The notes beneath the pieces are model-generated. The model was not told the origin of the DNA, ran no database searches, and saw only the letters and a list, made by a program, of their open reading frames with translations. Positions 7,161-16,416 of a stretch of 64,000 bases of DNA are shown here, in pieces. How positions within the stretch are numbered: the stretch's first letter is position 1; every line of letters starts with the position of its first letter. Source of the DNA: Lytechinus pictus (Eukaryota); the NCBI RefSeq assembly GCF_037042905.1, contig NC_087246.1, positions 29,016,001-29,080,000 of the forward strand, given 5' to 3'. Made by a program: the position numbers and the translations under genes.

Positions 7161-7855
7161 TTCAGCAGGAAACAAGTAAAGTAGCTCATGAAAGAGATGA
7201 AGGCAACTTATAATTCTAAATCTGAATAAAATCTCTATTTACATAAATATAATTTCAAAAATATTAGATTTAAAAGTATGTATGATCAAATTACTGTACT
7301 CTCTATCACTGAAAGAGAAATAAATGTTGTAATTCACTGCCAGCTAAAACTTGGGGTGGGGAGGGGGGGGGGGGGTCCTCAAGTGTCAATGGGTACTTAA
7401 CAAAATAACATAGGGAATGAGACTAATTGCACAAGTCAACCTTTCAAATGTCAAACAAAGTCAAAGCTAATTTTCAAAATATAATGTGCAAAGCATGTAT
7501 TACCTACCTATCTTAAGTTGAACAGAACTGTTCATTAAAAAAATTCTGGATCGTGAAATGCATCGTTAGCATGTGTTTATTTTAGGATGTTGAAGGTATG
7601 GACATTAAACCTCTCATAGATAGACATTAACAGAAATACTATACAAGTCTCTTTCAAGTTGTGATAAATTTAAGAGTCTATACCAATTAAAAGATTAAAC
7701 ATCAATAATATTTCTATTCATTGTATTAAAACCATCACATCATTAAACCCTTATAAACTCAGTACATACAGAATAACAGATATACAACTTTGTGCAAAAT
7801 AAATGGTATATTGAAAATAAGCCATGAAAGACTAGTTGCACATACACATTTCAAT

Positions 7856-8115
7856 AGGGACCCTGTCATACAAACAGTTTTGATTTGATCTAATTGATCT
7901 CAACTATGAATAGCCAGTGCCTTAACTGCATATGTCCATTCAAATTATTTTCTGAATATGATCTATGCTCATACATATATCATTAACTGGACAATCAGCT
8001 CCTCCGTATTTCCAAATGGACTTAGTATACATTTCCAGTATGAAGAATTACAAAGATGGATTACCATCGTAATGATTGATTGGATCTATCACAATTCTTT
8101 GTAAGACAGGGCCCT
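7856..8115. mobile_element. Small Harbinger-like MITE just 3' of the dehydratase stop codon
   Basis: AGGGACCCTGTCATACAAA...TTTGTAAGACAGGGCCCT imperfect inverted ends. Confidence 0.6.
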
Positions 8116-8148
8116 GATCACCCCCACTATATATACACGTAAGTCAAA

Positions 8149-11100
8149 TCATAGATTACAGGCTTCCTTGAATTTGAGCAACTGTTGAAGATTGATGGCG
8201 CCCCCACCGCACACGACGACCACCACACAGCCAAGCTTCTTGGGCAATTTGCCCTCGGCCTTCAGCTCACCTAGGACATCACTGTAGACTGCAGATGCGG
8301 CTGCCCCGCACGCTGGCTCAACCAAAATACGATGGTCATCTGGGGAGTAAAGACATATAGAAAATAATTGATTATGCATATTCTTGCTGTAGTGTGCTTA
8401 CTATTTTTTTCTTTATTTATTATAGGTCTATTTGTGTTCCAACATAATAGAAGTATTCGGGTAGTCCTTTATTTTTTCTTATTATCATCTATTGCCAATA
8501 TATGAAACATGAATTTTGTTTATGTTTTTATCATATATACATGCATGTAGAGTACCGAAGTGATGCATCACAAAAAACTTTTTTTTGCATTTCAGCATTT
8601 TTGATACCATATTTTAGTTGAGCATGATGCAATACCTCTACAACCCAAATTTGGTGGAAATTGGTCCATGGGGGCCTTGGATATGGCCTCACGAATACCT
8701 AATTAGCCCCATTGCAGTCAATGTATTATTGGTCTGGTTCTAAATGTTACTAGGAACCAGGCCAATAATACAATGACTTCAATGGGGCTAATTACATGTA
8801 TGTATTCATGAGGTCATCTTCAAGGCCCCCATGGACCGATTCCCACCAAATTTTGGTTGTAGAGGTATTTCATCATGCTCAAGCACAATATCATATCAAA
8901 AATGGTAAAATACAAAAAAATGAAAATTGATGATGTCACACTTTGGTACTCTGTAGAGGTTTGATGTATGATTCACTGACCTGCATGATCATAGTTCTCT
9001 GAACCTTAAAAAATAAACTGTACATAATGCACAATGTTTGTTTATAATTCATGTCAAAATCACTAGGAATTCTGGGTGGATTTCCTTTCATCAACAGGAG
9101 AGGCAAACAAATAAAAGAAAGCAAGGAGTTAATGTGCATGAATGCATAGGTATATAGCAGAAGGCACTGGAGCAAACATAAAAAATAATAAAAATAAATT
9201 GGAATGGCAAAACATGTAGTTTAATCTTGAAAGTACAATATATATGTTTAATTTGAGATTTCTTACTCCTAAAGAGACTGGGCCAATTTGAGGGATAAAT
9301 AGAGTGAAGGAAAGAGACCTGCTTCACACCCCCCCCCCCCCCCGATCTCATAGTTAAGCTTTACATCTGGATATACCAACTTTATTATGAATAAAAGTTT
9401 CTCAAAATTTCTCAGGGAAATAATAATGGAGTTGTGATCACATAAATCAGTCTAATTATCCTTTTACCTTTTAATTTTACATAGAATTTTAATAAAAATT
9501 TCATTCTTATGCTTGTTAGAATTATTCAATTTTCTTGGAGTGGACTTGGCCTTAAACTCAACAAATCAGAATCTCACTAGAATACAAGGGTACCCACCAA
9601 GTAAATGCAGGCAAGCATCTATGGCTCTTTGATCAGTAACCACACCAGAAAGAATATTGTGCTCTTTGTTAAGGGTTAAACAACGCTCAGTTACCCTCAG
9701 AGAACCAAGCGATTTAGCCACACTGATGACGAGAATTATAGCAAGATAGAAAAAGGAAGAGAAAATAATAAAATGAACAATACTTGGATATCACTTATTA
9801 GTGTTATGCAATTTTTTTAGCAATACCAAGGGTAAATATGATTACAGTGGAAATTCAGCCAAACAACTGATCTCATGATAACTGGGTCCGGTAACACAAC
9901 AATTAGCAATTAATTGTACGCTTGATTTTCATGATTAATTGTACCTCGTAGTCAATGCAATCAATCGTTAAAAAAATGCCTTACAATGATTGCTAAATTT
10001 TGTGTTACGGGCCTCAGGAGGTGTCATTCATCAATGCTTCTGACCAAGTGACAGTTGTTGAACCTTTTGAACAGGTGTTTCCTTGTAGACAGAAGTCCCA
10101 AAGATAAAGATAATATCTGATCAATTGTAAACTAATTACAATTGGTTACAGCTATATCACGTCTTCTCTTGATTAAACTGGGACTCCAACAATGATCTTG
10201 AAGGGTCATTGTCATTAATTGGGAATGAGCCTTTTGACTTTTTGAAAAACAGGTAGTAATATTTCATAAAGCTGGTTGTACATGACATGAATAGGGATCC
10301 TTTCTGTGCAAGATCAGATTCTTAGTAATTCTGTATTCCTGTCAGCTTAAAATTTTTGTTTATCACAAGCATTTTAATTCAAATTTCATAGTTGTGTCAA
10401 AATTTTTAAAGAAAAAGGTCACAAAAAACCCCCATAAATTGGGGGGGGGTTCTCATTTAGCACATCAAATGGTGACTAAATGTATGTTCCAGCTTTGTGT
10501 ACATGTAACTAATATGAAGTGGCCAGAGGTCCCTCAGAGAAGACCTAAAACAATCAGTACACTGCTTTAATTCGTACAAGCATTCATGTTTTTAAGCCAT
10601 GGTATAAAATCATTACTAAACCACTTGTGGACAAATCAGAGATTATAAATGAAATCTTGGTACAAAACATATCAGATCTGAATTTCCACTGTATAATCAC
10701 AGCAGAAAATCAAAAGTGCGCTTATTCCAAAAGTTATGGTGACATTTTCAGGCAAAAAAATAAATGAAGCAAACAAGTTATAATTTGTTAGAAGCAAAAG
10801 TTGTCTTGATGCAAAATCACCAACATACCAAGCAACTTCAGACAACCCTTTATGGCATCTTTGTCTGGAACAACACAAGGTATGATGGGATACTTGGAAG
10901 AATACTCCAAACTCTTTTCACACACGGTGAGGGCACCTAGACACTTGCACATACTGTAAGTATGAGAAGTAACAATTCTACATAGCTTGATATCAATCAT
11001 TCATTATTAATATTATTATTAATTGTTTGGCATCAGTTATGCCTTGGAGGCGAAAAGCAAACTGAATGACTCTACTAAAGTAACCAATTAAAGGAATGCA

Positions 11101-14100
11101 GATGGGCCACTACACCAGGGCCCCCCCCCCAGCTACTCTTAAACAAATAGTGCAGTGGGTACTGTAAGTGCAAAGACAGTGACTCTCCTCTACATGGGGC
11201 CTCCATTTAACATCCTATCCGAGGGACGTAGTGTTTTCCTCTGTAACATATAGCCTGCGTCTATGGAACGTGGGAGGGGCACGTTACACACAACGTAGGT
11301 TTCACTCATCCTCAATTGGACGTTATACTTATTCATGGATCAGGCAATTTACATTCACTTCGTCTACGTCTCAGAAAGTCTCTTTTAGGACAAAGGTTAA
11401 ACCCATTGGTCCTACTATCAATGTGGTCTCATTGCCGTTTGTTTTAAAACCACATTTCTTAGGTAGTAATTGTTTTTTTTATGCCAAAGAAGGATTTACT
11501 ACAATATACTTAATCGGAGCACTTAAGAATATATTTCTGTGTTCATGATGTAAGCTGGCAAATAATTATGGTACTGGTATTAAATTCTAAAAATATTATC
11601 TTGAACATTTTTGGGGGGAGGGTGGTTACCGGTATTTGAATCTATGTACAGTTTTAAAAAAATTAATCTAATGTAATTGTTGATTGTTTTCTAACCTGGT
11701 TATATCTGGTAGTGTCACAAGTTTCCCAGCCTTCACTGCAGCATTGAAGCTTTCAGCACCAAATGTTTCCATGGCAACTACAGGAACATCACTCCATCCA
11801 ACCCTCTGAAGACCCTGAACGACCCCGCAGAGCAGGCCTCCACCCCCGACGCATGTAACAACCACGTCAGGTTTTTTACCATGAAGCTGGTTTTGGATTT
11901 CCAAAATCATAGTCTCATGCCCTTCCCTGTTAAGTATTGAAAGGGGTTCAACAGCCTTTTAAGTGAGAAATATTAGGAACAAAGAATAAATGATAAATCA
12001 TGTTTAATTTAAACCTATTTGGACCCATCCCATAGCCTCTATAAATTGTATTAGAGAAAATATGTCCAGAGGATGTAAATCAGACTATTCCAGACAAGAT
12101 AGCCATTTCAATTAAATTTGTAGGCAATATTCAACAGATTTTTGAGAGGTGATGTTGGACAGTAATACCACAAATAACAAATTATCTGTGCTGTTTGATG
12201 CATAGATATTGTAATTTGACAATGAAGTAGAAATAAAATATCTGGACATCAACCCCCATTGTGCTATAACATACCGGTACATGATGTACCATGTACAAAT
12301 AATAATATTAATAATGGTAATATTAATAATAATAATAATAACCACAATAATAATAATTATAATAATNNNNNNNNNNNNNNNNNNNNNNNNNNNNNNNNNN
12401 NNNNNNNNNNNNNNNNNNNNNNNNNNNNNNNNNNNNNNNNNNNNNNNNNNNNNNNNNNNNNNNNNNNNNNNNNNNNNNNNNNNNNNNNNNNNNNNNNNNN
12501 NNNNNNNNNNNNNNNNNNNNNNNNNNNNNNNNNNNNNNNNNNNNNNNNNNNNNNNNNNNNNNNNNNNNNNNNNNNNNNNNNNNNNNNNNNACTGATAATA
12601 ATACTAATAGTTATACTAATAATCATTGATATTTATATTGCGCTTTAGACAAAAGTTTCAAAACAAATACCCATGATGGTAAGCAAAAATGCCTTCAATT
12701 TTAAAATCCCCCTTCCCTACTTTGGTTGGAGATAAGAATTGAATGTCCCATTAATCACATATTGCAAATATTTTTGTATCATACCAAACATCGGGATGAT
12801 CAAACGGATGGATGACTACTGCTGAAGGATCTTCCTCTGCCAATTGAAGAGCATGTTGGTTAGCATAGTCCCATACCTGTAAAGAATCATGTATGATATG
12901 TGCTGATTTGCCAGACAAACAAAATATTTAAGACTCATGGTCAGTTTTCCAATGATCGAGTTAGGATCTAATCTTACAATGGACGTTAACCGTAATATAT
13001 AGTTGGTTTTAATAAAACAAAAACAAACGAAACATCTATCCCACCAACATGCGAAACATCCAACCCCCTCCTTAAAAAAAGGGAGAGAAAGAGAGAGATA
13101 GAGAGAGAAAAAAAGACAGAGGAAAGAAATTGGTTTGCCTACTTTTCCATGGACAATGACATTGGCTCCAAGATCTCGTATTTTGTCTGCCATAAATTTG
13201 GGTGTACTCTCCGGAACCACAACTATTGCTGGCATACCAAGTTGTCTTGCAGCATATGCAGCAGCGTACCCGGCATTTCCTCCTACAAAACCAAAGATAA
13301 GACAACACTGTAAAATCATTGCAAAAATGTCAAGAGGGTGCTGATGACAGTTTGAAGTCATTCAAATTTTGTTCTTTACTGCATGGATTTACATTTCCCT
13401 ACATGTATGTGAGGTTAAGAATCAATAACTGAGAAATTTGACACATTTCAAACTAAATTATGAACTGCCTAAATTAACAACCATAATTACTCTATTAAAC
13501 AGGGACAACTTCTCAAAGACCTTGAGAGTTTAACTACTATATTGATATACATTTCAACAAGAGACCAAATTATCATCATTTTCAATCAGTTATCAAAGCA
13601 ATAGACATCTCGTTATCTGAAAGGACTTGATAGACCTTTGTGGGCTTGCATACTCTTTAAACCAAATATCAACCAAAGTATAACTTATAAAGGTTGCCAG
13701 TTGAAAACACACTTCCAGGCGTTTGCTCAAGTAGACAAGACTATCTGAAATTACACTTCCCATACCTGATAGGATTGTGGGATATTACCTGATGAACTTA
13801 TGATTCTTGTGTATCCAGCTTCAAGAGCCTGCAAATCACCAAAAAAAGTAAAATCAACGTCCATGAATACAGATACTCATCAATCCGTTTAGTAGTCCAT
13901 GATTCGACATTGATATTTCACTTGTATGCACAGATGATAATAACAAAGTCCTGGAAAAACAATGTTTTTCTTTTTTGTGATGAGGCTTAGGATCATCCAA
14001 TAGTAGTGAATTATAAACTGTTCATTTTTTTAAGTTAAGAATTAATCTCTTCTTTCAGTAGGCATATCTTACTGGTATCTTTTCAGAACTATTAAAGACC

Positions 14101-16416
14101 AACAAAAATAGTTTCATATCCTTCAATAATAATTTATATTCTATTTTCAAATTTCATTATGGGTATAGGCCTATTTACAGAGGTACATGTGGTTGGTCAT
14201 GAGAAAGGGGGCAGTCTTGTTTTATAGAATGAGTTTATGGCATTATGGGCATGCAATATAACATCATACCTCTTGATTTTGTGTATGTGTGTAAGTTTTT
14301 TTTTATATATGTATAATAAGTACTATAACTACATCCTTCCTTTACTTTAGATATTTTTCATCAGAGTGTAACATTTTTAAGATCATGTTTTGTTATTTTA
14401 AATTATTAGCAATCATTAATCTTTGAACTGTGAAATTCAATTGTCAACAATCTTATTTCTATACAAATTATAGGCCTAATCTAACCTGCAAAATATGCAA
14501 TCTGGTTGAAATAAAAACTATTAGAAGATTTTATTAAACATATTTACATTTATTCTTTCTGGAAAGTTCATGAAATTCACACTTCATGACCTTGGGTCAC
14601 AAAAAATGGGGGTGTTGTTATAAACACATGTATCTATTGACTATATTCTGATCTCATTTTGTGGGTTGAATTTCCCTTACAAACTAACAACTTAAACTCA
14701 ACTTAAACATCGAGTCAATGATTGACCACACAGAAAAGGGTTAATTTCCATTTTATCATGGAAACGGCCATGAGCGTTCCTCTGTGGCACAAAAAGCTCC
14801 ACAACTCGGGCACAAGCTAGGTTCTCACCCATCCACAATCTGCACTAGCTGCACTGCAGCAGGCTTGCCTAATTTACAATAACACAGAATTCCTAAAGAC
14901 TTAGACTTAATTCATTTCACAATAGTACTAGTAGCCTGGGGCCCGTTTCTCAACACCGTCATAAGTCTAACTTCTTGACTAAATCGGAGATAGTGAGCTA
15001 CTTGTCCGCTAACCGTTTCACGAAGCCCTCTTTACCAAGATCGGGTACAACAACCTCACTAAATATTTATGACACCTCCGAACCTGTCATAACTTCTTTC
15101 TTAATGACGTAGAGGCATCACGTGGGTAGACTATGACATGCAAAATTGCCTCGAAATTTGAAAATTGTAATCTTACGTAATCATTCATAGAAGTTGAAAT
15201 TACATTGCAAAACAGGTGTGATAGATCATTCAATAATAATTGTTATGCACAGAAACTATCAAAACTGTTGGTAAAACGCAACAAAACCACTCATTTTAAA
15301 ATAGTAAAGTAATTGAATCGATAAAGATTCTACCACGGCAGGTCATCCATAACTGGACTCGTATTCGTCGTTTTCAAACACTTATCATCATTTTTGATAA
15401 ATTCTATCTCTAATTTATGCAAAGAATTTGTCAAATCATGTGTTTCGGTATGTAAAAAAAATAAAAAAAATTAATTTAAACTATATTTTGATGATGTTTG
15501 GAACCATAAATAAACGTATAATTATCATTATTTTACAAAGATAACAATTGTGGTTTACTTTCGTAAACTATCAAAATTTACTATCCCGGGGATACCCATC
15601 TCATTGTCCCCATGTGATTTTTTAGTCATGAAATGATATATTCATAATTTGATTTTCTCAGCAATTACATGCTCAAGTCTTCATGGTTTATTAAGTATGC
15701 ATGGTTCATATTTTGCCTCTGCTATTATTTTTATTAGATGTATTTCCAAATTAATCACAATAATTGCAGTTTTATCACATTTTTGCTTTTCAAAAATTAT
15801 GCTATTTTGTGACTAAGGCTACATCTCGTCTGCTTTTTCTACCGATAGTATCGATATCAAGGGATTCTAGTTAGGAAGCCCTTCGTGAAACGGGTTTAGT
15901 AAGATTGGAACTAACTCCGTGGTTGGTGGATAAAGATATGACTAACTTGTCCAGGTGTTGAGAAACGGGCCCCAGGGTGCTAAAGCCGGAGTATTCTCAT
16001 CATGTTAGGCAGGGCCCGCTGGGTCCAATCCCCGGCCCTGGCTGGGAAAATAGCTTTTGGAACTGATCTGTGATCTGTCTACGTCTGAAGACCCAGGAGG
16101 CAGGAGCCAGAACAGGACATTTAATACAGGTACAAATTATTTAAGAATTTTTCATCCAAGTTCAAACACGTCATCAAATATAAAATCATGAAAATCTAAT
16201 CCTCCTAATATTACCCACGCTAATCATGTTAAATGAAATATTTTGCAACTTATTTAGTACCTTCTTGCATCTGTTTCCAATACCCCTAATTTTGAAGGAT
16301 GCCGTAGGTTGCATGTTGTCACATTTGATGTACACTGGACATCCTGCGATCTTCGTCATTGGAATGCTCTCCAAAAGAGGTGTCTTTATATGAAGCTCAG
16401 GTTCAGATCCTGCCAT
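8149..16416 (-). CDS. SDSL: L-serine/threonine dehydratase (SDS/SDSL family, PLP fold II), 324 aa. Exons 16416-16261, 13828-13789, 13282-13143, 12876-12785, 11926-11696, [10953-10829 OR 9722-9598], 8339-8149
   Basis: Motifs TPLLES, PLP-lysine SFKIRG, SSGGNAG, HPFDHP, VGGGGLL, VVAMET and EPACGAA. All introns are GT-AG with matching phases. The total is 975 nt with either exon 6. SSGGNAG and SVAKSLG resemble SDSL more than SDS, but the gene is probably co-orthologous to both. Confidence 0.95.
8548..8953. mobile_element. Fold-back MITE in the last dehydratase intron
   Basis: AGAGTACCGAAGTG...CACTTTGGTACTCTG ends; the arms pair over most of the length (GAGCATGATG..ATACCTCTACAACC, AATTAGCCCCATTG). 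Confidence 0.75.
9598..9722 (-). CDS. SDSL: Serine dehydratase alternative exon 6b (125 nt; not in the ORF track)
   Basis: CATCAG acceptor, G|GTGGGT donor, phase 2 to 1; encodes (S)VAKSLGSLRVTERCLTLNKEHNILSGVVTDQRAIDACLHLL. Confidence 0.9.
9882..10017. mobile_element. Short Harbinger-like MITE between exons 6a and 6b
   Basis: CTGGGTCCGGTAACACAA..TTAGCAAT and ATTGCTAA..TTGTGTTACGGGCCTCAG inverted ends. Confidence 0.6.
10829..10953 (-). CDS. SDSL: Serine dehydratase alternative exon 6a (125 nt)
   Basis: TTACAG acceptor, G|GTATGT donor, phase 2 to 1; encodes (S)MCKCLGALTVCEKSLEYSSKYPIIPCVVPDKDAIKGCLKLL. Confidence 0.85.
11005..11230 (-). mobile_element. Degenerate SINE remnant with a Deu-domain-like core
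   Basis: Minus strand CGTCCCTCGGATAGGATGTTAAATGGAGGCCCC...GCACTTACAGTACCCACTGCACTATT resembles the DeuSINE/AmnSINE core (from memory) and ends in an (AAT)n tail. Confidence 0.5.
12299..12625. repeat. (AAT)n microsatellite spanning assembly gap 12367-12590
   Basis: AAT repeats on both sides of the N run. Confidence 0.9.
14939..15972. mobile_element. PIF/Harbinger-like non-autonomous element in dehydratase intron 1
   Basis: GGGCCCGTTTCTCAACACC...GGTGTTGAGAAACGGGCCC TIRs, CTG/CAG flanks, subterminal inverted CCGTTTCACGAAG. Confidence 0.75.

Follow-up and report, generated by a model that had tools for sequence, protein, structure and literature searches.

The stretch of DNA analysed here (the window) comprises 64,000 nucleotides of the sea urchin Lytechinus pictus (NC_087246.1, positions 29,016,001 to 29,080,000). 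It carries, on its minus strand, a serine dehydratase/threonine deaminase-like gene in which the sixth coding exon is present as two tandem versions, 6a and 6b (Table 1), very probably a mutually exclusive pair. The exon model was obtained by translating the open segments of the minus strand between 6 and 19 kb of the window and by reading the junctions. With either version the coding sequence is 975 nt long and encodes 324 residues, and neither version contains a stop in the frame used. Exon 6a lies between an acceptor ending in cttacag and a donor starting with gtatgt, and exon 6b between gtcatcag and gtgggt.

Two versions of exon 6 in a serine dehydratase gene

Aligned without gaps, 6a and 6b share 17 of 41 residues and 66 of 125 nucleotides (BLASTP counts 18/41, since it reads the first GTG as M). 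This likeness is far beyond chance, as the BLASTP E value was 2e-11 and the ungapped score was matched by none of 100,000 shuffles. Each version occurs once in the 812-Mb assembly, where each is the other's sole relative. Exon 6a encodes the motif SMCKCLG and five Cys residues, 6b the motif SVAKSLG and two. An earlier reading of the same DNA, made from the letters alone (the original prediction), had described precisely this arrangement: two homologous 125-nt exons running from phase 2 to phase 1, stop-free and with intact AG/GT sites, sharing 17/41 residues without gaps, either of which completes a 324-residue protein, and with the motifs and Cys counts given above. All of it was reproduced by the exon model and the alignments, at the exact positions listed in Table 1.

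Table 1. Position of the gene, its exons and related features. Positions are those of the window, except in the last two rows, which refer to the Amphiura filiformis locus.
Feature	Position	Strand	Remarks
Serine dehydratase/threonine deaminase-like gene, coding part	8149..16416	(-)	7 coding exons, 324-residue product; AG/GT at all junctions
Exon 1	16416-16261	(-)	
Exon 2	13828-13789	(-)	
Exon 3	13282-13143	(-)	
Exon 4	12876-12785	(-)	
Exon 5	11926-11696	(-)	constitutive, 231 nt; ends ..TLPDIT + AG; donates to 6a or 6b
Exon 6a	10953-10829	(-)	125 nt, phase 2 to 1; residues 221-261, CKCLG motif; minor, ancestral-type copy
Intron 6a-6b	9723..10828	(-)	1106 nt; contains repeat at ~9916-10066
Exon 6b	9722-9598	(-)	125 nt, phase as 6a; AKSLG motif; major, divergent copy
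Exon 7	8339-8149	(-)	last coding exon; begins AT/GAC.., ends at stop codon; accepts from 6a or 6b
Amphiura tandem exon 6, first copy	L006:8180-8304		125 nt, AG/GT
Amphiura tandem exon 6, second copy	L006:8378-8502		125 nt, AG/GT

Judged by its sequence, the gene encodes a fold-type II enzyme of the SDS/SDSL type, dependent on pyridoxal 5'-phosphate (PLP). The PALP family (PF00291) spans residues 9-306 of the 324 in both forms (E = 5.1e-71 for the 6a form and 2.7e-73 for the 6b form), and so covers essentially the whole product, with no extra regulatory domain; exon-by-exon PALP matches were also found in the window. In the structure database the product matched human SDS (4h27, 7.8e-101; 1p5j, also at ~1e-100), rat SDH (1pwe, 1.1e-100) and human SDSL (2rkb, 1.1e-99), while matches to biosynthetic threonine deaminase (IlvA) and serine racemase were much weaker (1e-27 to 1e-33). 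K42 (in SFKIRG), G170-G173 (GGGG) and C305-G307 (the C-terminal CGG) fall in invariant or nearly invariant columns across 40-42 homologues. We take K42 to be the Schiff-base lysine for PLP and GGGG to be the glycine-rich phosphate loop. All three motifs lie outside exon 6 and are kept in both isoforms. A search of the PDB with the single exons matched 6b to human SDS at E = 0.16 and found no match for 6a, the exons being too short to inform. PALP-domain exons were also found at nine or more other loci of the assembly (G000:C8:5.10 Mb, C17:28.41 Mb, C11:5.57 Mb, C2:19.37 Mb, C7:16.64 and 10.96 Mb, C9:13.88 and 25.02 Mb, and C16:21.98 Mb). These loci represent further genes for fold-type II PLP enzymes, and a close relative of 6a or 6b is absent from all of them.

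L. pictus XP_063971079.1 (RefSeq isoform X1) matches the 6b product at 100% identity, and XP_063971083.1 (isoform X2) likewise matches the 6a product. Isoform pairs X1/X2 are also listed for L. variegatus and Strongylocentrotus purpuratus, so that both isoforms had already been predicted by automatic annotation in three urchins. A third S. purpuratus model, X3 (269 residues), is the exact product of including both exons and stops within 6b. The urchin RefSeq models X1, X2 and X3 can thus be read as one mutually exclusive system plus an unproductive by-product. A full-text literature search returned no paper on a serine dehydratase with mutually exclusive exons, save an unrelated camel transcriptome study.

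Transcripts, reading frame and control of exon choice

RNA data were mapped to positions 7500-12000 of the window, as two contig sets (X1 and X2, from one study and the same species) and two stranded raw-read runs (X21 and X22); these labels denote data sets, not RefSeq isoforms. Spliced joints had CT..AC ends on the plus strand, which corresponds to GT..AG of a minus-strand gene, and first mates mapped to the plus strand, which is where common stranded library protocols place them when the RNA is of minus-strand origin. Counting junctions was the check proposed with the original prediction. The joints that include 6b were present in all four data sets: 5-6b (11696/9722) had a depth of 117.8 in X1 and 14.1 in X2, with 9 reads in X21 and 14 in X22, and 6b-7 (8339/9598) had the same two depths, with 27 and 7 reads. 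Both joints of a productive 6a transcript were found in X2, where 5-6a (11696/10953) and 6a-7 (8339/10829) each had a depth of 7.8; neither occurred in X1 or X22, and X21 had one read for 5-6a and none for 6a-7. The joint 6a-6b (9722/10829) was seen in X21 (5 reads with 3 different starts) and had no count in the other three. No joint that skips from exon 5 to exon 7 was listed in any of the four.

X2 contains twin unitigs of 180 nt that share an identical 29-nt flank of exon 5 and an identical 26-nt flank of exon 7, and carry either 6b or 6a between them. A genuine either/or bubble has just this signature. From the depths (7.8 versus 14.1) the 6a form makes up ~36% in X2, while X1 lacked any 6a word despite a depth of 117.8 for 6b, and hence 6a usage differs sharply between samples of one study. 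All sampled 6a words were present in X2, X3, X30 and X31 (X3 and X30 being of the same species), and many runs of a close relative (organism B), from several studies, had the 6a words fully or by half. The half-share is explicable by a single-nucleotide difference in 6a between L. pictus and L. variegatus. Exon 6b is therefore the default, major form, and the 6a isoform has a productive mRNA of its own. At the RNA level exclusivity is incomplete, since small amounts of the out-of-frame double form are produced.

The RNA reads also revealed polymorphisms, at 9622, 9627 and 9675 in 6b, 11859 and 11892 in exon 5, and 8241 in exon 7. Those in 6b include the non-synonymous changes I to V, R to T and T to I, of which R to T is also a fixed difference from L. 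variegatus. The sole variant seen in 6a (10872) is synonymous.

Since each version is 125 nt long (3n+2), the frame is lost and an early TGA is reached when both are included or both are skipped. In the double form the TGA lies at nt 24-26 of 6b, 99 nt upstream of the 6b/7 junction, and on double skipping it falls directly at the 5/7 junction, so that full-length enzyme can come only from single-inclusion mRNAs. Nonsense-mediated decay (NMD) usually requires a stop more than 50-55 nt upstream of the last junction, a threshold that the stop of the double form exceeds. The original prediction had given the same stop, the same distance and a frameshift on double skipping, and had concluded that exclusivity is obligatory. 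Exclusivity is indeed enforced by the frame, and both single-inclusion mRNAs were seen; the five double-inclusion reads of X21 and the S. purpuratus model X3 contradict it as a strict rule of splicing.

What could make the choice between 6a and 6b was addressed through spacers, splice-site classes and intron sequence. The 6a-6b spacer measures 1106 nt in L. pictus, 370 nt in Diadema setosum, 1678 nt in S. purpuratus and 2018 nt in L. variegatus. Spacers of 370-2018 nt rule out steric hindrance in urchins, in line with the original prediction, which had thought simple steric exclusion unlikely. Incompatibility of U2 and U12 splice sites is likewise ruled out, as all donors are of the gt(a/g/t)(a/g/t)g type and there is no (A/G)TATCCTT U12 donor. 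Comparison of the L. pictus and S. purpuratus introns gave no conserved block more than 33 nt from the exons, and scans for duplexes with conserved flanks gave none better than shuffled controls at homologous sites. A local hairpin at the 6a donor in the two Lytechinus species was not significant (z of -1.5 and -1.2), and S. purpuratus folds differently. In Diadema, a candidate duplex between the downstream flank of 6a and the 3' end of 6b (-42.8, against a control of -34.2 +/- 2.9) is a single-species, unreplicated case. RNA structure of the docking/selector kind, which had been put forward as a possible enforcer of exclusivity, was therefore set aside: the flanking introns gave no conserved pairing of complementary elements in what was a simple search that could miss weak or distant pairings. 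The choice is probably made by trans-acting factors that act on splice sites of unequal strength, with NMD clearing the errors.

The introns contain further features of their own. Intron 4 holds a run of 224 Ns (12367-12590) with AT-rich, low-complexity flanks. A foldback element lies in intron 6b-7 at 8580-8920, with inverted arms (8580-8701 and 8799-8920) that are 86% complementary and an inner pair of arms (8700-8740 and 8754-8794) that is 93% complementary. It shows very high contig depth, reads from both strands and joints listed as 'opposite strands', and resembles a repeat of the miniature inverted-repeat transposable element type. Further high-depth repeats occur at ~9916-10066 and ~11124-11274.

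Age, selection and structure of the exon pair

Orthologous loci were searched in L. variegatus, S. purpuratus and Diadema setosum, and in non-echinoid relatives. In all three urchins both exons are 125 nt long, have AG/GT sites and occur in the order 6a then 6b. In Diadema, an intact 6a lies at L002:16286-16410 (OZ188189.1), with AG/GT sites, and the annotated exon 6 follows it after 370 nt. None of the four Diadema RefSeq proteins examined contains this 6a, which is probably an unannotated alternative coding exon. In a tree of the 41-residue segment, the 6a sequences formed one clade (support 96/96) and the 6b sequences another (85/90), the latter on a long stem branch. The duplication therefore predates the split between Diadema and camarodonts, which lies on the order of 200 million years or more in the past. 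A second exon 6 was not found at the loci of a sea cucumber, three starfish, a crinoid and Saccoglossus (the crinoid locus, from Anneissia, has N gaps, which makes the absence there weaker), and the duplication is therefore most simply placed on the echinoid stem. In intron 5 of the starfish Asterias rubens (L005:6045-6083), an acceptor-like site is followed by ~24 nt that nearly repeat the exon 6 start (..ttag followed by GGTGCTAAATGCCTTGGTGCCCTT, 16/17 identical), ~300 nt ahead of the true exon; this element may be the remnant of a decayed duplicate or a chance match.

The lone exon 6 of starfish, crinoids and hemichordates (AKCLGALTVC..SLEY) is far closer to 6a than to 6b; that of Asterias, for instance, scored 143 against 6a and 92 against 6b. 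This outgroup resemblance, together with the long branch of 6b, indicates that the minor 6a is the ancestral type and the dominant 6b is derived. The original prediction had treated 6a as the odd copy, and here the polarity is the reverse: 6a resembles the ancestral ambulacrarian exon 6, and it is 6b that is divergent. Exon 6b groups weakly with amphioxus and a sponge (41/73), which looks like long-branch attraction. A deep origin, with 6b related to vertebrate SDS and 6a to SDSL, was considered and rejected, as all combinations are identical at 10-20 of 41 positions; common motifs such as TDQ appear again in molluscs and annelids, which also weighs against such an origin.

Between L. pictus and S. 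purpuratus, the ratio of non-synonymous to synonymous substitution rates (dN/dS) was 0.39 for 6a, 0.09 for 6b, 0.05 for exon 5 and 0.08 for exon 7. In the comparison with Diadema, for which dS is saturated, dN was 0.34 for 6a and 0.39 for 6b. Differences from Diadema at first, second and third codon positions numbered 16, 7 and 24 in 6a (p = 0.01) and 16, 8 and 27 in 6b. The 6a segment is identical at 41 of 41 residues between the two Lytechinus species and at 61% of residues to the Diadema copy. Between L. pictus and S. purpuratus 6a is 81% identical, while the introns cannot be aligned beyond 33 nt from the exons. For comparison, only ~11% of random 41-codon windows from introns are free of stops. 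The codon pattern, the identity within Lytechinus and the unalignable introns together show that 6a is under purifying coding selection, which is relaxed among camarodonts. This agrees with the suggestion in the original prediction that an old duplication had been kept by selection, and answers the concern it raised that one version might be a pseudo-exon: 6a is intact in four echinoid genomes, with substitution patterns of the coding type.

Six residues of the segment are fixed and type-specific (urchin numbering): residue 222 is Cys in 6a and Ala in 6b, 224 is Cys and Ser/Thr, 237 is Tyr and Leu, 242 is Pro and Asn/Ser, 249 is Pro and Thr, and 256 is Gly and Ala, respectively. Ala222 is otherwise invariant across the 42 homologues of alignment A3, and Cys takes its place in all three 6a orthologues, so that Cys222 of 6a departs from the family in a lineage-specific and conserved way. 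Residue 224 is the aligned counterpart of Ala222 of human SDS and Ser228 of human SDSL, within the motifs SVAKALG (4h27, 1p5j) and SVAKSLG (2rkb). The Ala/Ser difference between SDS and SDSL, which the original prediction had named, thus holds at the level of sequence. Structurally, residue 224 presumably lies against the PLP ring, and backbone atoms of its neighbours presumably bind the cation.

AlphaFold models of the two isoforms had mean predicted local distance difference test (pLDDT) scores of 94.1 and 94.0, a predicted template modelling score of 0.92 and identical secondary structure. In the models, the exon 6 segment forms a loop (220-231), a helix (232-240), a strand (243-248) and the first turns of a further helix (250-264). 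The loop, which follows a strand ending at S220, is the least confident block, with a pLDDT of 76 in both models. The isoforms differ at 24 of 41 residues (segment 221-261), and both exon versions are compatible with the fold as modelled. Modelling of both isoforms had been proposed as a means to compare them; both are predicted to fold equally well, and since the models are indistinguishable they cannot discriminate function.

An exon 6 duplication is also present in an SDS-like gene of the brittle star Amphiura filiformis. The two copies (Table 1) are 71% identical and separated by a spacer of 73 nt, and the RefSeq isoforms X1 and X2 (XP_072044435.1 and XP_072044437.1; 323 residues) differ only in residues 221-258. 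The Amphiura copies cluster together and with further Amphiura paralogues rather than with either urchin exon, and we therefore regard this duplication as independent of, and younger than, that of urchins. A 73-nt spacer could enforce exclusivity by steric hindrance, which makes the Amphiura exons a candidate pair. At the position of SDS Ala222, one copy has Ser and the other Cys. Cys and Ser changes at this position are also found in single-copy species (Anneissia, Lineus), and the parallel between urchin and brittle star is suggestive, not proof. The independent reuse of exon 6 and the Cys/Ser alternation point to this segment as a preferred site of diversification in serine dehydratases.

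Interpretation and comparison with known systems

We judge it highly probable that an old tandem duplication of exon 6 gave rise to a genuine mutually exclusive pair, in which 5-6b-7 is the default and 5-6a-7 the minor form, and which yields two 324-residue PLP enzymes. Exon 5 is spliced to 6b by default or to 6a to a degree that varies with the sample, and then to exon 7. Inclusion of one version gives a full-length reading frame, and inclusion of both or neither a frameshift with an early TGA; the double form would be cleared by NMD. The choice of 6a would be regulated by trans-acting factors and not by RNA structure. The isoforms would differ catalytically, most likely through Cys/Ala222 and Cys/Ser-Thr224, which presumably adjoin the cofactor.

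Several observations weigh against this reading. Only ~6% of each raw run was read, and the counts are small. RNA support for productive 6a consists of one contig set (X2) and of word matches in other runs. Among the X21 reads that touch 6a, five join 6b, one joins exon 5 and none joins exon 7, so that in X21 6a appears only in the unproductive double form. Non-synonymous evolution is ~4 times faster in 6a than in 6b among camarodonts, and the codon-position differences of 6a between L. pictus and S. purpuratus (8, 5 and 10) show no significant bias. Furthermore, the intron-conservation and duplex searches found no mechanism that steers the choice.

Some of these points would suit a different role for 6a, that of a regulated 'poison' exon, whose inclusion ahead of 6b shifts the frame and lowers the amount of enzyme through NMD, with the 5-6a-7 protein as a by-product. 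The X21 joints, the 269-residue double-inclusion model of S. purpuratus and the elevated dN/dS of 6a among camarodonts (0.39-0.46, above the neighbouring exons) are what this would lead one to expect. A poison exon, however, could do without an open frame, a fixed length and conserved residues, and 6a has kept its 125 nt and its open frame, 61% amino-acid identity to Diadema over saturated synonymous sites, differences that rank third > first > second by codon position, and fixed residues of its own. In X2, moreover, 6a is flanked only by exons 5 and 7 and accounts for ~36% of transcripts. We therefore consider this role unlikely. It is less likely still, and in our view very improbable, that 6a is a decaying relic of the duplication, included as functionless splicing noise. 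That it is a minor form, absent from X1 and X22, and that it is under relaxed constraint in the comparison of L. pictus with S. purpuratus would be consistent with decay. Yet 6a and its splice sites are intact in four genomes on both sides of the Diadema/camarodont split while the flanking introns have become unalignable, its orthologues form a supported clade, no residue of 41 has changed between the Lytechinus species, a random intronic window of this length would be stop-free only about one time in nine (~11%), and ~36% usage in one sample is too high for noise. As for the possibility that 6a and 6b come from two separate paralogues that the assembly had collapsed or joined in error, which the original prediction had named as grounds for its rejection, it is effectively refuted. 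Each exon occurs once in the 812-Mb genome with no other close relative, and three independent assemblies of other species show the same arrangement, with 6a followed by 6b between exons 5 and 7; unitigs with identical exon 5 and exon 7 flanks, and reads that join 6a directly to 6b, also speak against it.

A broader proposal builds on the mutually exclusive pair. Echinoids may have kept a splicing-based isozyme switch at residues that face PLP (222 and 224), one that predates the Diadema/camarodont split and that brittle stars acquired convergently, with exon 6 as a recurrent 'tuning knob' and with isoforms that are catalytically or redox-distinct by tissue or state, in parallel to SDS versus SDSL. 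We offer this tentatively, as a possibility that we would not yet favour. The observation in the original prediction is confirmed, and its interpretation as a whole is partly supported. If the isoforms do differ in kinetics, in the choice of Ser versus Thr, in cation dependence or in redox sensitivity, the gene would be a compact natural experiment, in which two otherwise identical PLP enzymes differ only within a 41-residue stretch around the cofactor, with the ancestral-type stretch retained in the minor form. What is new here is the polarity of the pair, the depth of its conservation with the Diadema exon, the conserved Cys, the double-inclusion RNA and the convergent duplication in a brittle star; a practical gain is the addition of an unannotated coding exon in Diadema.

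No new mechanism is involved, as mutually exclusive exons that arose by tandem duplication and are enforced by the frame are well known. Exons 9 and 10 of vertebrate PKM, which give PKM1 and PKM2, are such a pair, in a metabolic enzyme and with the swapped segment at a functional site; the urchin host is likewise a metabolic enzyme with the swap at a functional site. Like PKM-type pairs, the urchin exons are adjacent, homologous, of equal length and phase, and used one per mRNA; their length is not a multiple of three, so that double inclusion or skipping is out of frame, and the pair is ancient and conserved. Unlike in PKM-type pairs, the host belongs to the fold-type II PLP enzymes, and it is the divergent copy that goes into the major isoform, with the ancestral-type copy in the minor one. 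The human 'tandem duplicated exon substitutions' are further examples of mutually exclusive exons derived from tandem exon duplication (PMC8373072, PMC9741552).

Selection of one exon from a tandem array is also what the urchin pair has in common with docking/selector systems of the Dscam, 14-3-3zeta and MRP1 type, from which it differs in that its introns have no detected conserved complementary elements. The Amphiura gene resembles that of urchins in its tandem, homologous 125-nt copies of exon 6 with AG/GT sites, and differs in its 73-nt spacer (370-2018 nt in urchins). Vertebrate SDS and SDSL, the latter of which is less active than SDS, belong to the same family and fold, and they differ at the same residue, with Ala versus Ser there and Cys (6a) versus Ser/Thr (6b) in the urchin. 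However, SDS and SDSL diverge from end to end and each has its own promoter, whereas the urchin gene swaps only 41 residues under one promoter, and no specific relationship links urchin 6b to vertebrate SDS or 6a to SDSL.

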